DNA of 58,093 nt, filler included, from Bipalium vagum (lineage: Eukaryota), in the NCBI GenBank assembly GCA_037834085.1. It is 3 parts of 3 records of this genome, joined end to end, with 100 filler letters (N's around TTAATTAATTAA, not from the genome) between each part and the next. Parts side by side here need not be neighbours in the genome. Positions count along the whole stretch, not along the records: positions 18,309 to 41,876 come from JBBMKC010207709.1; 2 more parts are not named here. The stretch is one strand, 5' to 3'. Position numbers and translations under genes: made by a program. A model generated the notes under the pieces. That model searched no databases and was not told where the DNA came from. It was given only the letters and a program-made list of their open reading frames with translations. This document shows, in pieces, positions 32,201 through 41,030 of the stretch (position 1 is its first letter; each line of letters begins with the position of its first letter).

Positions 32201-35200
32201 AATTTAGTTACGCATGAACTGATTTGCCCTACCCCTGCAGAGGTTGTTGCAAGTAAACATCATTATTTGATTCACAATTATTAAAAATGTAGCTATTGAT
32301 TTTCATTGATGATATTTCTGGACTTCAAATTCAATTGTCAATTAAAAATTCATTTTTCTATTAAAATATTTACAATTTCATTTGGCTGTATTGAATTTTC
32401 TAGTGAGATTGATTCTTGTTGAATTGTTTGACAGTCGATTAATGGAATATGTATTCATGTGTAAAATTAAGTTAATTTCTCTATCAATTATTCATCATGG
32501 TTCTGTAATTCCACAACTACCTAAACACTGTTACGCTTACTAAATTGATAATTCTAATAAAAATGTATTTATACCACTTCATAAAAATATACAATCAATT
32601 ATCCTTTTCATAATTTTGATGATATCGATATTGTATAAATGAATTAGATTTTTTATGAAAAAATAACTCTAATCAATCAATATTTTTAATGAATAAAATT
32701 GTTTAAATAATATGTATAAAAATCTTATTTTATTGATTATCAATTTATCAATATACTTAACCTGTTCAATAAATGGCAATTGATAATTAAATGTTACTTG
32801 ACTTTTAGAATTTGAGCTTGAGTAGATTTTTTTTTATTTGAAAATGTATTATATATCTGAATAAGTTTAAATAGGAGAATAGAATGCTCAAAGCACAGAA
32901 ATATCTCAAATATTAATTTATATTGTGTTTTTTATTTTTAAAATAATTGACTTTTATAGATATAAAAAGACAAAGTCTAATAGATTTCTAAAATTTTCTG
33001 AAACATTTATACAATATAAGATAAAACATGAATTTAAATAAAAATATTATTTAAATATTTCAGTGAAACATGGGTTTTTTTTTAATATTAACAGTTCTGA
33101 TTTAGAAATGGTGCTAATCGGATCAATAGAACTATAATTGTTTGATTATGTTACCTATATTTTGTAAACTGACGTATGTTCGGAATTTTAGTTTCATTCA
33201 AAGTGGGTTGAACGAACATTCCAGACTTAAAGTATCATTTTGTTTAAAGATTAAAAATTAATGAGGTGTGTTTATAGTATGAATCAATTTTGATATATAA
33301 ACATTTATTTTATTGGTAAATTAATAATAAAATATTTAATATTTTTTATCCTATTATAAGTTTTCCTGACTCTTTAAATTATATTTTATAATAAATGATA
33401 CGAACCTCTCATTTTTGAAATAACTCTTTATTTTAAGATCTATTATAATTAAACTCTTGATGTAATTTATTATATTACTCATGAATCTTATTTTTATTTC
33501 GACTTCTTGATTTTATTAAGAGTACAACAACAAATCTATACTTTTAACGTCCATGTTAAAAATAATTCGTAGTCAGAGTTACTACTGAGCATCGCTTCAA
33601 CTTATTGTCTCTGTTCTTGTACTCCAACATTCTTGGACTTAATTTTTCTTACTTCGTTGACAATCGATTCATTTGTTATATTATGAACAATATAATCATT
33701 TTATCATGTAATTAATTTGATTATTAATTTCTATTAACCTTTGAAATTGTAAGTGACATATGAACTATATATCTTCCATAATACTAACTATTTTCACATC
33801 ATTTTTGAGTATGTGGGTGTGCTACTTAAACCTGGCTACTTTAGAAGTATTGAATATCTTTGTCGAAATAGATATTTTTTTAGAAGGATTAAGGAATTAA
33901 ATTGAAATTATCTGAAATTATCTGATGTTCCTTTTGGTTTTGCATGTTTTCTTGCAACATGAATATGGATTTTTAAATTCTATGTAATTCTGGATGTTCT
34001 TATTTATAAATATTTATGAAAATAAAAATAATTCCATTCATCACTTTCTCCAAAATATTAATATTTGGGCAATTAACGATGTCACTATGTTAACAATTCT
34101 AAAAGATCTTTCGTTTGTAAGAAGATCAAATGAATAAGGTTAACTTATACTACTTCCTGTTTTATTTTGATTTCATTTTACTTTTTCTGATGTTACCATA
34201 AATTATTGGTAGTTTTTTGTATAATTAATTTTATATTCAACTGTTTATTTGATGAAATTAAAATTTTTATTATATTATTATTTTCATTAAATTTCTTTTG
34301 ATTTTTAAATAAATAAATTGATTTGATAAAATCTCTAAATAAAATTAAGGTTTTTTCCATAAATTTCTAAGAAAATTATTTATTTTGTTTTTTGTCAATT
34401 TTATTTGAAGATATATTCTAAAATTTTAATTTCCTTATTAATAAATTATTGTAACACTAATAATTTTTATTTTTATATGATAAATTTTATTTTACAAATA
34501 GTTTTAAATATTTTATAAAGGAAGTTAAATTTTCATTTATAAAGATTATTTTTGATAAATATTAAAAAAATATTTTAATATAAAAACAGATGATGGTCAT
34601 CATTGTATTTGGAATCTTAAGCTTTACGTTACATTGAAAAAATATTTTTTATTTTTCAACGTTTTTTTAATTAATAAAGTTATAATAAGAATTTGTAATG
34701 AAATATTTTATATATTATTTCAGAAAATTCATTTCAGTGGTTTTTAAATTTTTTTGTAAAACTTTAATCGTAAAACTGGTTTTTTTAATTTGATAAAATA
34801 TAGATACAAAAAATTATTCTGAATTTATAATTTTTTATTTTGGTGGTAACTATTGTTTTTTTAATCAATATTTGATAACTATATTTATAAGTACAGTATT
34901 GATTTTAAGTTTAACACACCCTATATAAATATATGGATAGCCAGACCCCTCGGGCCCTTGCAGACCTTCGGGCAGATCGTACACCGAACCTCAACTCCGC
35001 GCGACGTCTCAGACTCGTCTTCGTCTTGAACGCCCATGAATGCTTGCTAAATTAATAGTAGTGAACTCTCCATGAATTGCGTGAAGTTGTGTACCCAGCC
35101 GAAACCGAGTACGTGTTTCAGGTAATTACAGGGTCGATGCCACCCCTGCAACCACCCTATCCCTGGATCGGCTTTTACGCAACTATCAACCAGTGTATCC

Positions 35201-38200
35201 CGCAAACCTAGCCAAATTGGTCCCTATTCAGGTTAACAACTCCACTGCAAGAAGGTTTTGACCATGGGCTGACCCTGGCAGGCCAGTTTTGTCGGAGTCA
35301 AAAAAGAAGAAACCATACGCTCACAATGTTTACTTGATATTGATAATCAAGCTTCATGAATACTCTCAATGAGTTCTTCAACATTGGGAACTGTTTTCCT
35401 TGTCACATTCTGCTTCATTATACTCCATATATTTTCAATACAGTTCAAATCTGGACTTTGAGCAGGCCATAGTACAATACAATCGTCCATATTATGATCA
35501 TGTAACCATTGCTGAACTTTTTTTGATTTATGAACAGGGCTATTATTCATAACAATTTTGAAATCTGGGATTTGGAATAATTCAATAGATGGTATTAAGG
35601 AGTTTTCTAATGCCATAATGAAGTCATAAGCCTTGACATTATAACTGAAGACATGAAGAACACCAGCACCGCTAAAATTCATGGTGCCGAAAACCTCCAC
35701 CTACAGCCTTAATAGCGACAAAATCTGAATTCCATATCTCTGACGACAACCTACGAACAACAAAGCGATGATTTTGAGGAAATAAGGCAAAGGAGCATTC
35801 ATCGGTCCAGATAATTCGATTCCAATCTTCCGATTCCAATCTACTAAAACACTATTGGATTCTAACCCGTCTATTACCAACACGTAACATGGGAACTTTA
35901 TAACTAATCCTAGCTCTAAGTCCGTACTTAACAAAAATTTTGCGGACATGTGATTCTGATATATTAATACTCGATGCTTTCCTCAATTCTGCCGATGTTG
36001 CACGACGATTTTGTCTGCATAAACGATATAAGTATTGTTCATTTCGGAAAGTAAATAGCTTGGGACGCCTAGACCTAGGACGATGTTTGACCATTCTTGT
36101 TTCTTCAAATCGACGGATTGTTTGCAAAACACATGTCCTGGATGTTTTTAAAACTTCGACTATGCGCTTCTTAGTTGTTCCGACACAATGTGGCGTAACA
36201 ATTTGCCACTATAATGAATCGTCTATTGTTTGTTTACCCATATAATATTCTAAATAATAAAATGATATTTTAAATGATTTAACTTAATAATAAAAGATTT
36301 AATTTTAAGTTATAAAATTTAAATTCAAAAAAATAAATCATTAAATGATTAAAATAGCTTATTAAATGAAATATGAAAATGATATAAATTGATATAAATG
36401 GACTACAATTCAGTTTTATATGGGGCGTCTTAAACTTAAAATCATTACTGTATACATAATATAGTAAATGTATTTTTATTAACTATTTTAATTTAAATTT
36501 TTAGTAATTTTATATCAATTTATTATTATTTTTATTTTATTACAATTTGCTGTCAGATTTTATGAGTTAAATTATTAATAAGAAAAACTATTGTTGATAA
36601 CATAAAAATCAAATTAATATATATAGTCAAAAGTATATAGTATAATAATAAGTTGTCTCAAAATATCATAAAATATATATTTAGAAAAGAAAAATTTATT
36701 GAAATTCAAATAACTATGAACAGAAATAAATTTCGTACAATATCTATTTAAATGATTATCTCTTACCTTGACCCACCTCTTATATTTGGATTATTATAAG
36801 AATTGCTCCTAATTTTTATGTCTCATTTTCTCAATCGTTTTCTTCTTCGATAGACATGAAGTCCTCTTCCGTTATGTATTTGCAAAGCCATCACATTTTG
36901 CTTTCGGTCTGGATTATGGTTAATTAGAACCTTGCTTTAATAATTGATCGTGACTTCAAGGAACGTGGCATACCAATTCGGAACTTATAATTAATTAAAT
37001 TCTGGTTATTTCCTGTGTAATATTTGCATTTTCTATTAATTTAAAGATCGTTGTTGGAGAGTGTGTGTACTTCTGTAAAATCAAAAGTTCAACACTTTAA
37101 AACTAATGCATCAATAGATTAGTTTTTTAAGTTCAACCATCTTAAAGCTTAAAATAAATAATTTTTATCTTTCTGTAAAAATTTTAGATTATTGAATATT
37201 AAGGCTAATTCTTGGGACAAGACCTATTATAAGACTATCTGTCTATATATATACCAAGCATTATATTCTTCCGAACATAATAATAAGTTATTATGTTTAT
37301 ATTATTCCCATAAATAAATTTGGTCTAGACTATTTCTATTATGTTAAAAATGATTTGTAAATAGATATATCAATAAGGTTTCATAACAATACTCAATAAT
37401 AATTTACCTTAGTATTTGTGTTAAATTTTCTGAGATAATCTGATCATTTTATTGATTAATATTAATCAGCACAACGTATGAATTTAAGTAAAATAGACAC
37501 TAAATCAAATTATTTAATTTCAGTTGAAGGCGGATGTCACATTTTGGAAGATGGTCATTTTTTCTATGACAAGACCATAGATATGGAAAATGAAATTGAA
37601 CCGGATTTGGAATTTGATACTAAAATTCGTGGTGTAAATGAGGTGGTGAGAACTTATAAAAGGGCTGGAGCAAAAGTACATTTCGTATTGGAGAAAGTTC
37701 GTGTATGTTTACCAATATATTTTTTATTTTTACTTTATATTATTTATCATTTTTTAATATTATCTAAAAAACAGGTTTACAGCACATATCCCGAGAATGA
37801 ATATAATCGAAGAAATGAAGAAATCGATCCTTTATCTGCATCCGCTGAATTCGAAATGGAAAAGCGATTAGAAAAAATGAAAATATTCCCCGTTGATTTA
37901 TATAAAGGTATCATTTACACAATTAAATAAAATTAATAAATTATTTATTTTCCTTTTGTATAACCGTGTACAGTCAGGTGAAAAATGTATACACTCAAAA
38001 TTTTTACTTTTCTCTTTTTACATGATGTTAAATGTTACAAAACAAATATTTATATACAAATTTAATACCATCACTAAATATTTTAATGTAAAACATCGAA
38101 ATTTAATAAATATCTGATTTCATGGATGATTTTTGTTTTAATTTTTGATATCAAATTAGATAGAAGATATTCCCAAATATTTATTATCAGATGCTTACAC

Positions 38201-41030
38201 ATTTTATTGAAATTATGATTATTACAATTTTCTTATAAAAAAATGATTTTTCTATTATGATTTCCTTATTTTAAAAACGATTTTAGGCAGTAAAGGTTTG
38301 GGGATCAGTATTCTTGGTATGGGTGTCGGTCACAGTGTAGGATTACAAAAATTGGGAATTTTTGTCAAATCAATAATACCCGGTGGAGCAGCCGAAGAAG
38401 ATGGGAGGTTAATAATTTTTGCTTAAAATCTCTTTTTGGAAACAAGTAGAATTCAATATTGATTTGTTAACAACACAAGGTTTCTTATTTTATTATTTAA
38501 TAATGAATAACATTGATATGGTCATAAGAGGTTAAAGGTGATAATCATAAATTATAAAAACTTTTAATGAATGATAAAATATTTTTGGTATATTTATTTA
38601 AATTAACAGATTTTCAACCAATTTACAAGTTTCCACGTGTATTCATTCTTCATAGAAAATAATTATTTTTCAAATCTACGAAATATTCAAAGATTTCTAC
38701 TTATCTTTTTCATAGATTATAGGCTTAATTTTTATTTAATGAAATGAACTTTACATTTTTATGGTAGGATTAACTTCTCAGTAATATTTTGTTATCCATT
38801 ATAGGAGAGTTTTATGCATAATTTTGTTATTCTGATAATAATAATAAATATAAAATATAGAAGAAAATATAAGCGACAGATGTTTTTAATTAAATGTGGA
38901 CGTCTATGGATGTTCTTAAAAGAAATATTAAGTAAAGATATCGTGAATTCTCAATATATGTGTTAAAGAAAATGTCAAGTGATAATAGTTAACAAAATTT
39001 GTGTTCAAACTGATGAAATCTTTAAGGAAATTGAATGCCAATTATTTGTTTGTTAATTTGATTTGTTCTGTGAAATCTTTATTCAATTAATTTTCTAATT
39101 TTGAGATATGTACCATTTATAATTGAATAATTTTTAGCATAATCTCTAATTGTTTTTATATTAAATATTTAACACAATATATTTATGACATTTTATTCTG
39201 TTTGTTCAATTTACTTAAAAAAAAAAATATTTTAATTTTAATATTTTATTCTTTTAACTTATTTGAATTGGAGATACTAAAGTGATTAAAATAAGAAAAA
39301 ATAGGTATATCTTAAAAATTTTTAATTATAATGAAAATTAAAAAATTCTTTTATATTGATATTCTATTTTATTTATTAAAATAAACAAGTTATGGTGTAC
39401 AAGTTAATAATAATGAGATTGTAATGATAATTAGCAAAACAAAAACATAAGTTATAAAGAGTATCAGAAGTTTAAGCACAACAAGATTAAAAATGTGAAA
39501 TCAATAATTATTAATGAACTATAGTATTATTATCGTCAAAACATATACCAACTATCTTTTTTCTTTATCATTTCATTAATTTTAATGCGCAACATATATA
39601 TAAATATTTGTGAAAATCATTAAGTATCATCAATTCTAAGTTTTTATACAAAATCAGTTCCAATGACATGACTTAATAATTTTGTTTCAGAAACAAACAG
39701 ACTGGATATAGTAACTTCTTGACAGTGTTTTTGATATAATGGAGTCTGCTTTGTTTTTTTTCAGATTTATTCTTTTAGTACTTTGGATAGTGAAACCGTA
39801 AAAAATATATTTTAAAAATGATATAAAATATTGAATAAATTCTTAGTTTTATTAATTTGTATGTTTTTATAAGTTTTTACGATGATTTATATAAAATAAT
39901 TGAAATTTTTATTAATCTTGAAGAAAATTTTACTCTATTATTTTATTCTGTTCTTTATTGTTTTTCTTCTCAAATTTTTCGAAGTCGAATTTGAAAAAAA
40001 TGATAAAACCAGCACATCTTTAATCGACAACTGCCGGGTCTTTAAATTTATTGAACTTCTTTTTACTGCATCAAATGAAAAAGTAATGTATGATTAATTA
40101 TAATTGTAAAAAGATATATGAAGATAATTTATGCTAAAGACTTGATAATAATTTTAATTAAGTAAAATTCTTTTTTCGTAATACCATTCATTTTAATTAC
40201 TCTTCTACATCAAATCAATTTGATCAAAGAACTAATATCAGAATCTTTTTTATTTTTAATCAACTTTATATCCTTAATGAATAGATCAAAATTAGATTTC
40301 AAATTTTTTTAATGAATAAGAGCAAAATATACTCTTGGGATTCTGTCAACCTTAACTCAGTTGATTTATATATTTAAGAAACTGTAAGAATAAATTTTCT
40401 TTTTTTATGTATATATAATAATTATTGGTTCCTTTGATCAAAGTTTAATTTATTATACTAATATTTAATTTATGAATCTTTCAAAATAAACTGGTAATTA
40501 TATATATTCATTTAAAGCAATAAAATGCTATTTCTGTTACAATAATATACAATTTGACATGTTGATGAAAGTGGCATTTTTATATAAAAATTTTTAGGAA
40601 ATGTGTTTTTCCCTTAATAACAAACTCTTAATTGCTTTTTTTTGTAAAACTAGACAATGATAAAAAGTAACTGACCTTCAAATCAATAGCTTGTATCGTA
40701 CTATTACCCTTAATTTATTAATATAAATATATAAATTATTAATAGATTTTAAATATATATTCATTAAAGTCGTATAAATTTGAACTATACGTGAGATATA
40801 ATCAACTAAACTCAGATATATTTCGATTAATTCAGAAGAGTTTTATGTTTGAAATTTTTATTAAATTTTGTTACAAAATGAAATGTAAAATTTAGAAATT
40901 TTTCTTGATCATATAAAGTCAATAGGATTCAAGTCTACGATCAGATAGTTGAAGTTGACGGACAGAGCTTGGTTTGTGTTTCCCAAGAATACGCAGCTTC
41001 CGTTTTGAGAAATACTTATGGTGTAGTTAA
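23222..41030 (+). CDS. Spn: Neurabin/spinophilin (PPP1R9 family), 5' part
   Basis: Phase-consistent GT-AG exons: 23222-23265, 23314-23484, 23533-23656, 27655-27827, 27880-28259, 29252-29282, 31905-31959, 32036-32252, 37524-37702, 37775-37907, 38287-38407, 40926-41030. They encode N-terminal [13 protein letters not shown] (actin-binding motif), the PP1 RVxF motif KVHF followed by [32 protein letters not shown], and a PDZ domain [47 protein letters not shown]. The gene continues past the contig end. Confidence 0.92.
25952..27170 (+). mobile_element. rosa/DD41D-family transposon, full length, inactivated
   Basis: TIRs (C/T)AGG(C/G)TGGCCACTAAAAGACT with TA on both sides. Motifs MSNEAHF, VWCG, WFQQDGA and [14 protein letters not shown], with 41 residues between the 2nd and 3rd D. 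Contains stops and frameshifts. Confidence 0.9.
29488..29908. mobile_element. Tigger/pogo-type MITE
   Basis: Imperfect TIRs CAGTGGACTTCGGTTAATACGAT and ATCGTATTAACTGACTTCCACTA, with internal copies of the CGTATTAAC motif. Confidence 0.7.
34921..35037 (-). pseudogene. N-terminus of a non-LTR retrotransposon ORF with a truncated C2H2 zinc finger (R2/HERO/NeSL-like)
   Basis: [35 protein letters not shown], then an abrupt junction into the Tc1 TIR (IFI*). CxxC-x12-H with RGLxIH is typical of RLE-clade N-terminal fingers. Confidence 0.7.
35209..35299 (-). ncRNA. HDV-like (CPEB3-type) self-cleaving ribozyme
   Basis: Manual fold: P1 GACUCC(G)/(U)GGAGUU with a G1-U wobble; J1/2 hairpin CUGGCC/GGUCAG; P2 UGGUCAAA/UUUGGCUA; P3 ACC/AGU (one mismatch); L3 UUCUUGC; J1/4 GU; P4 CCU-GAAU-AGG; J4/2 CCAA, with the putative catalytic C at 35220. 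Confidence 0.75.

Follow-up and report, generated by a model that had tools for sequence, protein, structure and literature searches.

A probable hepatitis delta virus-like ribozyme of R2-clade retrotransposons, preserved as a decayed copy inside a Tc1 transposon of Bipalium vagum

We analysed a stretch of 58,093 nucleotides of Bipalium vagum DNA (GenBank assembly GCA_037834085.1), referred to here as the window, which joins three parts of the genome; positions 18,309 to 41,876 come from JBBMKC010207709.1. On the minus strand of this part, at 35299-35209, lies a 91-nt segment that we read as a fossil copy of a self-cleaving ribozyme like that of hepatitis delta virus (HDV), of the type that stands at the 5′ end of R2-clade retrotransposons lacking long terminal repeats (non-LTR retrotransposons). 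From sequence comparison we put the probability of this reading at roughly 0.85. The segment shares its ancestry with the 5′ end of an R2 element residing in the 28S ribosomal DNA (rDNA) of the same genome; the fold is conserved between the two, their copies have a common 5′ terminus, and the window copy sits, as part of a larger fragment, within a DNA transposon of the Tc1 family. In the living relatives of this copy the RNA is predicted to cut itself at that terminus.

RESULTS

An HDV-like fold on the minus strand

When the minus strand is read out from 35299 to 35209, every segment proposed for an HDV-like fold is there, in canonical order. The sequence and segment order quoted in the first-pass annotation, made from the sequence of the window alone, match the DNA exactly, and the elements on which it relied (a G1-U wobble, an 8-bp P2, an L3 loop of the UUC type, GU at J1/4, a P4 hairpin and C-N-A-A at J4/2) can all be found. 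The segments are as follows.

35209..35299, minus strand: putative HDV-like (R2-type) ribozyme domain, decayed copy; from the sequence, the family alignment, pair counts and a covariance-model match
35294..35299, minus strand: P1 5′ strand GACUCC, with G1 at 35299; pairs with GGAGUU at 35243-35238, the G1-U wobble first
35265..35293, minus strand: J1/2 insert of 29 nt; read from the sequence
35257..35264, minus strand: P2 5′ strand UGGUCAAA (35264-35257); pairs with 35216-35209
35244..35256, minus strand: predicted active-site block, with P3 ACC, L3 UUCUUGC and P3′ AGU; two CpG-type changes
35238..35243, minus strand: P1 3′ strand GGAGUU; from the family alignment and pair counts
35221..35237, minus strand: J1/4 GU (35237-35236) and the short P4 hairpin CCU-GAAU-AGG; from the alignment
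35217..35220, minus strand: J4/2 CCAA, with C35220 as predicted catalytic cytosine; ACCAA is identical in both lineages described below and nearly invariant
35209..35216, minus strand: P2 3′ strand UUUGGCUA (35216-35209); immediately after it, 6 nt present in the family are deleted

A candidate hairpin within J1/2, at 35286-35269, was read by eye from the sequence and stands outside the pair count given below. Cleavage is predicted 5′ of G35299. The window copy keeps the L3 U and G, the C-N-A-A of J4/2 and G1, and across both lineages the L3 U and G, the J4/2 cytosine and G1 are invariant or nearly so.

The segment opens a dispersed R2-clade family

The 35299-34935 block, about 365 nt long, has a GC content of ∼50%, while the surrounding genome has 10-20%. 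We searched the genome's own assembly (440 Mb in 272,664 contigs) with 35310-34930 as query and obtained 40 scored matches among 84 candidates, at 75-90% identity; with a covariance model that includes the window family, the genome yields 89 matches at E values up to 1. The family has at least 40 to 89 dispersed copies. Aligned together with their flanks, the copies show a sharp shared start, upstream of which the DNA differs from copy to copy. In fourteen other copies the first bases are GACTCC, aligned with G35299 and preceded in each case by an unrelated flank, and three more differ in the first base only (about 50 further model hits are excluded from these tallies). The first-pass annotation had noted that HDV-like ribozymes define the 5′ ends of several retroelements, and this one fits: the HDV-like fold stands at the sharply defined start of the retroelement RNA.

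Copies that extend past 34935 continue into an open reading frame (ORF) with a C2H2 zinc finger (zf-C2H2) and a reverse transcriptase (RVT_1). The longest ORF piece of the family has its best match in Bombyx mori R2 (8gh6; E 3.1e-63, chain residues 577-1021). Database relatives are 30-37% identical, and those that bear a name are R2 elements, for example an ‘R2DM’-type entry and the element of Triops cancriformis, which is listed as an R2 (PMC3774820). The window family belongs to the R2 clade. Its 3′ end reads ...GGCTAAGGTGTATA followed by six to eight A, and the sequences on either side of the copies are unrelated AT-rich DNA, so that neither the 5′ nor the 3′ flanks place it in 28S; it behaves like the published non-target-specific R2 families. 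Three copies of 1.4-1.7 kb (L005, L012 and L015) keep both termini, that is, the 5′ ribozyme sequence and the 3′ ...GGTGTATA with its A run, and have lost most of the ORF through large internal deletions with differing breakpoints.

The run of T before G1 could be taken for the poly-A tail of a retroposon inserted on the plus strand. We rejected this candidate: other copies have no A or T run at this place, the minus strand is the one on which the family runs on into its ORF, and ...GGTGTATA with a short A run, the family's true 3′ end, lies at the opposite side. Since the family runs into a minus-strand ORF and ends at the other side, the minus strand is the sense strand and the T run is not a poly-A tail.

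Two side observations concern particular copies. L027, L021 and L074 share another upstream sequence (CTTAGATAATAAAGAAAATAAA...) and have altered P1′ strands; they may represent a sub-lineage whose 5′ end was extended or replaced, or one locus that was duplicated. On contig C28481 a gene of the Ars2/SERRATE type (Pfam ARS2 and SERRATE_Ars2_N; L031 2368-4569, minus strand) follows directly after a truncated family copy.

A canonical R2 in 28S rDNA carries the same fold

A reverse-transcriptase search of the genome led to L050 (contig C200135), which has an intact ORF of 1061 aa with an N-terminal zinc finger and RVT_1. The closest solved structure is again Bombyx mori R2 (8gh6; E 2.5e-124, chain residues 268-1096), and other R2 proteins, including zebra finch R2Tg, are also among its best solved relatives. 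Upstream of the ORF, the Rfam model of eukaryotic large-subunit (LSU) rRNA matches with 85 bits (E 2e-19) and ends at ...GACUCUUUUAAG, the classical R2 insertion site. Because the LSU rRNA match stops at this site, L050 is a genuine R2 in 28S rDNA.

In L050 the G of GACTCTTTTAAG, which precedes the 28S/R2 junction by 12 nt, is the first base of the putative ribozyme. Its 7-bp P1 (GACUCUU / AAGAGUC) uses 28S sequence as the 5′ strand; the J1/2 hairpin (CUUGC-GAAA-GCAGG) is unlike that of the window and occupies the same place; P2 is UGCUAAA / UUUAGCA; and the core reads ACC-UUCUCGU-GGU, with GU at J1/4, ACCAA at J4/2 and a longer, bulged P4. In the window family the fold occupies the very 5′ end of an R2-clade element, and in L050 the 28S/R2 junction.

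As a side observation, at the 5′ junction of an R2 in 28S from an unrelated sample (L078 900-1010, a marine metagenome contig), ∼25 nt of upstream 28S sequence are duplicated in tandem; Eickbush et al. tied such duplications to upstream cleavage.

The two lineages have diverged far: their reverse transcriptases are ∼51% identical, and their 5′ untranslated regions (UTRs) cannot be aligned outside the conserved strings. L050 and the window family agree fully in the core strings AAAACCUUCUCGUGGU, GUUAAC and GGGACCAAUUU. The active-site block is ACC-TTCTCGY-GGT in the family and in the rDNA R2, the window copy being the outlier, and the leaders have GACTC in common, with identity at 7 of 12 positions.

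We counted pairs for the proposed pseudoknotted structure on 19 sequences, the rDNA R2 and 18 family copies. Standard pairs fill 94.3% of the cells, a share that falls to 31-55% once the 3′ partners are displaced by 1-3 columns; the nested double pseudoknot, with P1, P2, P3 and P4 in canonical order, is recovered by this count. Covariation among homologous copies, which the first-pass annotation had named as a check, is present in a few lineages. Five pairs changed on both sides, compared with 1.4 ± 1.1 in shuffles, where five was reached once in 500. Between the lineages, C-G in the window family corresponds to U-A in the rDNA R2 at P1 columns 6/58 and at P2 columns 40/100; P2 columns 37/103 change from G-U to U-A and columns 39/101 from U-G to C-G. 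Within the family, the U-A pair of P4 is C-G in L008, L017 and L026 and U-G in L011.

Homology was also recovered without any use of the window family. A covariance model (A2) built from the rDNA-type lineage only, with zero window-family members, was run unfiltered over the 23.6-kb piece. Its top match is 35299-35204 on the minus strand; it is full-length, starts exactly at G35299 and scores 31 bits (E ∼5.7e-5). A second match of this model, 40269-40362 on the minus strand (16.5 bits, E 0.066), is AT-rich with broken pairs and is probably due to chance.

Copies begin at the predicted cleavage base

Four of the weaker model matches were rDNA-type R2 copies from outside rDNA (L066, L067, L069 and L070, on contigs C101807, C1749, C91762 and C43926). 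All of them start with GACTCTTTTAAG, a 12-nt leader from inside 28S, and directly upstream each has a different non-rDNA flank. They share two derived changes, L3 UUCCCGU and a G1-U in place of G1-C. Over the two lineages, more than 18 dispersed copies have their 5′ end at G1. As there is no RNA polymerase I (Pol I) start 12 nt inside 28S, a copied RNA that begins there would have been cut at that position, and this position is the very base predicted by the fold, which points to cleavage at G1 in vivo.

The published R2 ribozymes show the same layout. Most of them cut in 28S at a distance of 9-36 nt upstream, and one class does so at -13; their P1 is of 6 or 7 bp with a 5′ strand made of 28S sequence, J1/4 has 0-2 nt, J1/2 can be as short as ∼20 nt or exceed 700 nt, and P4 varies greatly (PMC3774820). 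The most conserved string of R2 ribozymes is CCUCCUCGUGG (Kojima et al., PMC5035012), and the string found here, CCUUCUCGUGG, is one base off. The first-pass annotation had described the P3′/P1′ stretch as 1 nt shorter than canonical: P1 does have 6 bp in the window copy, which is nothing unusual, since 6 or 7 bp is the norm in R2 (PMC3774820).

One could suppose that the conserved 5′ structure is real and is not a ribozyme, serving instead in protein binding, translation or as a promoter element, with the 5′ end set by a transcription start or by a host nuclease. Cleavage of every copy is only predicted, the ribozyme models of Rfam give no match, and R2 RNAs are known to carry other structured segments that bind protein. 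However, the conserved bases are exactly those of the HDV/R2 active-site block and the C-N-A-A of J4/2. The shared start of the copies is also exactly the first base of P1, even in those whose first 12 nt come from 28S, where Pol I has no start, and the same arrangement self-cleaves in many R2 lineages (PMC3774820). We regard such a non-catalytic role as unlikely, and continue to read the structure as an R2-type ribozyme.

The window copy is decayed

Sister copies have TTCTCGCGGT (L018, L029 and L015) or TTCTCGTGGT (most others) where the window has TTCTTGCAGT. The differences are CG to TG and CG to CA, that is, C to U in L3 and G to A in P3′. The first-pass annotation had proposed UUCUCGC and GGU as the ancestral forms of L3 UUCUUGC and P3′ AGU, altered by CpG transitions; the sister copies indeed carry these bases. 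The 6-nt deletion after P2′ shortens P2 from ∼10 to 8 bp, and the fragment is without the ORF and without the 3′ end of the element. The changes leave P1, P4, the conserved G of L3 and the cytosine of J4/2 untouched, and an R2 ribozyme of Nasonia vitripennis with a mismatch in P3 still cleaves (PMC3774820); for these reasons residual activity is possible. Judged from its sequence, the window copy is probably weakly active or inactive, and its pattern of changes looks like unselected decay. The earlier suggestion of a slow or inactive copy is reasonable.

Evidence against a ribozyme

Several results weigh against the ribozyme interpretation. In the window copy the P3′ change removes the pair next to L3 and leaves a C-A mismatch in a P3 of 3 bp, and the second change alters one base of L3 itself. 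The covariation rests on few lineages, and variation within the family is mostly the neutral decay of dead copies. Minimum free energy (MFE) folding of the segment is no better than that of shuffles (z = +0.43). Finally, a 701-nt slice of the window gave zero ribozyme matches to the HDV, CPEB3 and drz models of Rfam at E values up to 10, the check that the first-pass annotation had proposed and which here failed to detect the fold; at gathering thresholds the whole piece gave zero Rfam matches.

The last two results carry little weight. Plain MFE folding is blind to pseudoknots, so that null is uninformative. The Rfam search with E up to 10 also gave zero ribozyme matches in four better-preserved loci, and because it missed the ribozyme of the R2 in 28S as well, its null in the window is weak evidence; the R2 type of this genome lies outside the coverage of the HDV-type models of Rfam. 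Model R1 gave no match on two R2-bearing contigs from other samples, being too sequence-specific, and an exact-pattern search for the core matched the rDNA R2 alone. Among the assembled contigs of sequencing runs, the R2 5′ UTR was found in the DNA contigs of one run only, and RNA of the element turned up in none of the runs.

Taken in isolation, the window copy might pass for a chance HDV-like motif in GC-rich DNA that shares no ancestry with real ribozymes. Loose HDV descriptors often match by chance, and a P3 of 2 bp plus a mismatch, a P4 of 3 bp, a long J1/2 and the MFE score are what one would expect of such a motif. Against this, the family to which the segment belongs numbers more than 40 copies and starts at a fixed base, the segment is homologous to the 5′ end of the R2 in 28S, and its ‘defects’ are private mutations of the window copy. 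A chance origin therefore has hardly any probability left, and shared descent from an R2 ribozyme is the reading we retain.

A captured fragment within a Tc1 transposon

The surroundings of the segment are made up of the following features.

35306..36459, minus strand: Tc1-family DNA transposon with a frameshifted transposase, its left inverted repeat at 36415-36459; from inverted repeats and Pfam
34885..34929, minus strand: right inverted repeat of the same Tc1 copy; from the inverted-repeat pair
35300..35305, minus strand: six T between Tc1 and G1, filler or untemplated bases; absent from canonical Tc1 and from other family copies
34935..35299, minus strand: 365-nt 5′ fragment of a dispersed R2-clade non-LTR retrotransposon, the remainder gone; from family copies

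Inverted repeats of 45 nt and Pfam matches to DDE_3 and HTH_Tnp_Tc3_2 identify the host as a Tc1/mariner element, whose transposase is broken by frameshifts and split over several frames. In more than 40 other Tc1 copies, 93-98% identical, similarity to the window copy ends at 35306. These copies have ∼108 nt of Tc1 sequence in place of the six T and the 365-nt fragment, and rejoin the window copy at ATATATTTATATAGGG; the 3′ joint shows ATAT(A) microhomology with the element. The ribozyme sequence is part of a 3′-truncated R2-clade fragment that replaced ∼108 nt of the Tc1 3′ region and is not a Tc1 feature. That the GC-rich cassette might be a native part of Tc1 was rejected, as more than 40 Tc1 copies are without it. 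The first-pass annotation had located the ribozyme inside a DNA transposon, which is true of the physical nesting between the Tc1 inverted repeats and does not extend to membership in Tc1. It had also set the cleavage site close to the end of Tc1 coding similarity, and this agrees with Tc1 ending at 35306, followed by six T and by G1 at 35299.

As for its origin, the likeliest explanation is that complementary DNA (cDNA) of the 5′ part of the processed RNA was captured at a break in Tc1, because the fragment starts exactly at G1 and has no element 3′ end. Alternatively, the element may have inserted in full and then have lost the rest through a single deletion.

A second Tc1 copy, on contig C230190 (L025 / L054; compared with 35306-35049), has an R2-like 5′ piece at the identical Tc1 breakpoint (...GGTTTTTTC|). 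Its piece is of another subfamily (ATTGCC type), the first six bases GACTCC are absent, and the contig ends within the piece. Either Tc1 has a hot spot at this place, or gene conversion produced the shared breakpoint. A segmental duplication was considered and is not supported: beyond the inverted repeat, alignment of the flanks yields nothing more than AT-rich noise, and the two cassettes are not of one subfamily.

This second copy bears on the idea that the window copy is still active and was co-opted to process transcripts made from Tc1 or from the host locus. The changes have spared P1, P2, the catalytic C and the G of L3, the P3-mismatched Nasonia vitripennis R2 ribozyme mentioned above does cleave (PMC3774820), and a second Tc1 copy has an R2-like 5′ piece at the same breakpoint. 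However, only 2 out of more than 40 Tc1 copies have the piece, and the Tc1 transposase is frameshifted; moreover, the two active-site differences from the family are ordinary CpG decay, which argues against selection. Co-option appears very unlikely to us.

The Tc1 family itself (34885-36459) is abundant and young, with 92 candidates and scored copies that are mostly 88-98% identical over the last 175 nt. At 38298-38426, on the plus strand, there is an ORF fragment resembling a PDZ domain, and a host gene therefore probably lies just beyond the Tc1 element.

DISCUSSION

A model for the living elements and the fate of the window copy

We suggest the following course of events. In living elements, the first ∼100 nt of the transcript would fold into a nested double pseudoknot of P1, P1.1, P2, P3 and P4 with a variable hairpin in J1/2, the active site being formed by the cytosine of J4/2 (the C of ACCAA) together with the L3 loop. 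The RNA would then cut itself just 5′ of G1, which would free the RNA of the element from the upstream transcript. In the rDNA R2, the processed RNA would retain the P1 strand derived from 28S, because G1 lies 12 nt inside 28S. Two lineages have spread beyond rDNA, the window family and a close relative of the rDNA R2, and since both dispersed lineages carry the leader, the ribozyme would be self-contained. As for the window copy, 365 nt of the RNA 5′ end would have been captured as cDNA in Tc1, with the loss of ∼108 nt of Tc1; two CpG transitions in the active-site block and the 6-nt deletion after P2 would have followed the capture.

It is tempting to extend this to the question of how R2 elements leave rDNA. 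If the cut lies upstream in 28S, an ectopic insertion would already bring along a complete, context-independent ribozyme and could found a dispersed family; the window family might be an older escape of this kind and the GACTCTTTTAAG-led copies a younger one. The 28S origin of the leader is plain in the younger lineage and plausible in the window family. We hold this scenario tentatively, at somewhat less than even odds. If it is true, it would offer a mechanistic route to ‘non-target-specific R2’ families, and the genome would preserve a record of where the RNA is cut in vivo; as it stands, it is a hint at how R2 elements may lose their specificity for rDNA.

Other consequences are more immediate. 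A reading made from the sequence alone recognised a degenerate HDV-like ribozyme and correctly predicted its ancestral bases. For annotation, the GC-rich cassette of the window is to be described as an R2-like 5′ fragment nested in Tc1. The genome holds an rDNA R2 and two dispersed R2 lineages that keep the ribozyme sequence, with copies starting at the predicted cleavage base. Such starts, including those with a leader from inside 28S, are evidence, at the level of sequence, for the model of upstream cleavage in Eickbush et al. 2013 (PMC3774820).

Comparison with known systems

The class, the role and the place of this ribozyme in R2 are already well established, and the window copy is a decayed R2 ribozyme. 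The HDV-like ribozyme of R2 was reportedly described by Eickbush and Eickbush in 2010. Like it, the sequence discussed here stands at the 5′ end of an R2-clade element, can form the nested double pseudoknot and has a P3/L3/P3′ block that is almost the R2 consensus, with a P1 of 6-7 bp, a J1/4 of 2 nt, a short or variable P4 and an expandable J1/2. R2 lineages that cut ∼13 nt upstream in 28S are R2B of Nasonia vitripennis and the B lineage of Tribolium castaneum (Eickbush, Burke and Eickbush 2013, PMC3774820), and the rDNA copy of B. vagum resembles them in its 28S-derived P1 5′ strand and a G1 12 nt before the junction. In contrast to these systems, the window family lies outside rDNA, has element sequence as its P1 5′ strand and ends in a short A run, and the window copy is a truncated and mutated fragment in Tc1 known from its sequence alone.

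With the antigenomic HDV ribozyme the segment shares the topology and a catalytic C, here predicted, four bases before P2′. Antigenomic HDV likewise has an ACC/GGU P3 and an L3 of the UxCUCGC type. The R2 consensus differs from it by one U/C (PMC3774820). The segment differs from antigenomic HDV in the hairpin of its long J1/2, in a P4 that is much shorter and in the rest of its sequence, which is unrelated; it also belongs to a retrotransposon and not to a viroid-like RNA. The CPEB3 ribozyme, a mammalian intronic HDV-like ribozyme, also has an L3 that begins with UUC and a GU at J1/4, the latter giving a weak P1.1 of one pair. These two features are all that is shared; there is no sequence homology, the genomic context is different and the CPEB3 model of Rfam gives no match. 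Of the label ‘HDV/CPEB3-type’ used in the first-pass annotation, we therefore keep HDV-like, on account of the fold and the homology to R2, and drop the membership in CPEB3.

Internally deleted, non-autonomous R2 derivatives have been published (Eickbush and Eickbush 2012, PMC3414825), and L005, L012 and L015 are like them in retaining the 5′ ribozyme sequence and the 3′ end with most of the ORF gone. The window copy is not such a mobilisable derivative, because its 3′ end is also gone. Dispersed R2-clade elements that coexist with a canonical rDNA R2 in one genome were reported in 2016 (PMC5035012) and for BLAG of Blattella germanica (PMC7650587), and B. vagum presents the same combination. 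While those papers describe no ribozyme in the dispersed families, here both the ribozyme sequence and a leader that looks like 28S have been kept.

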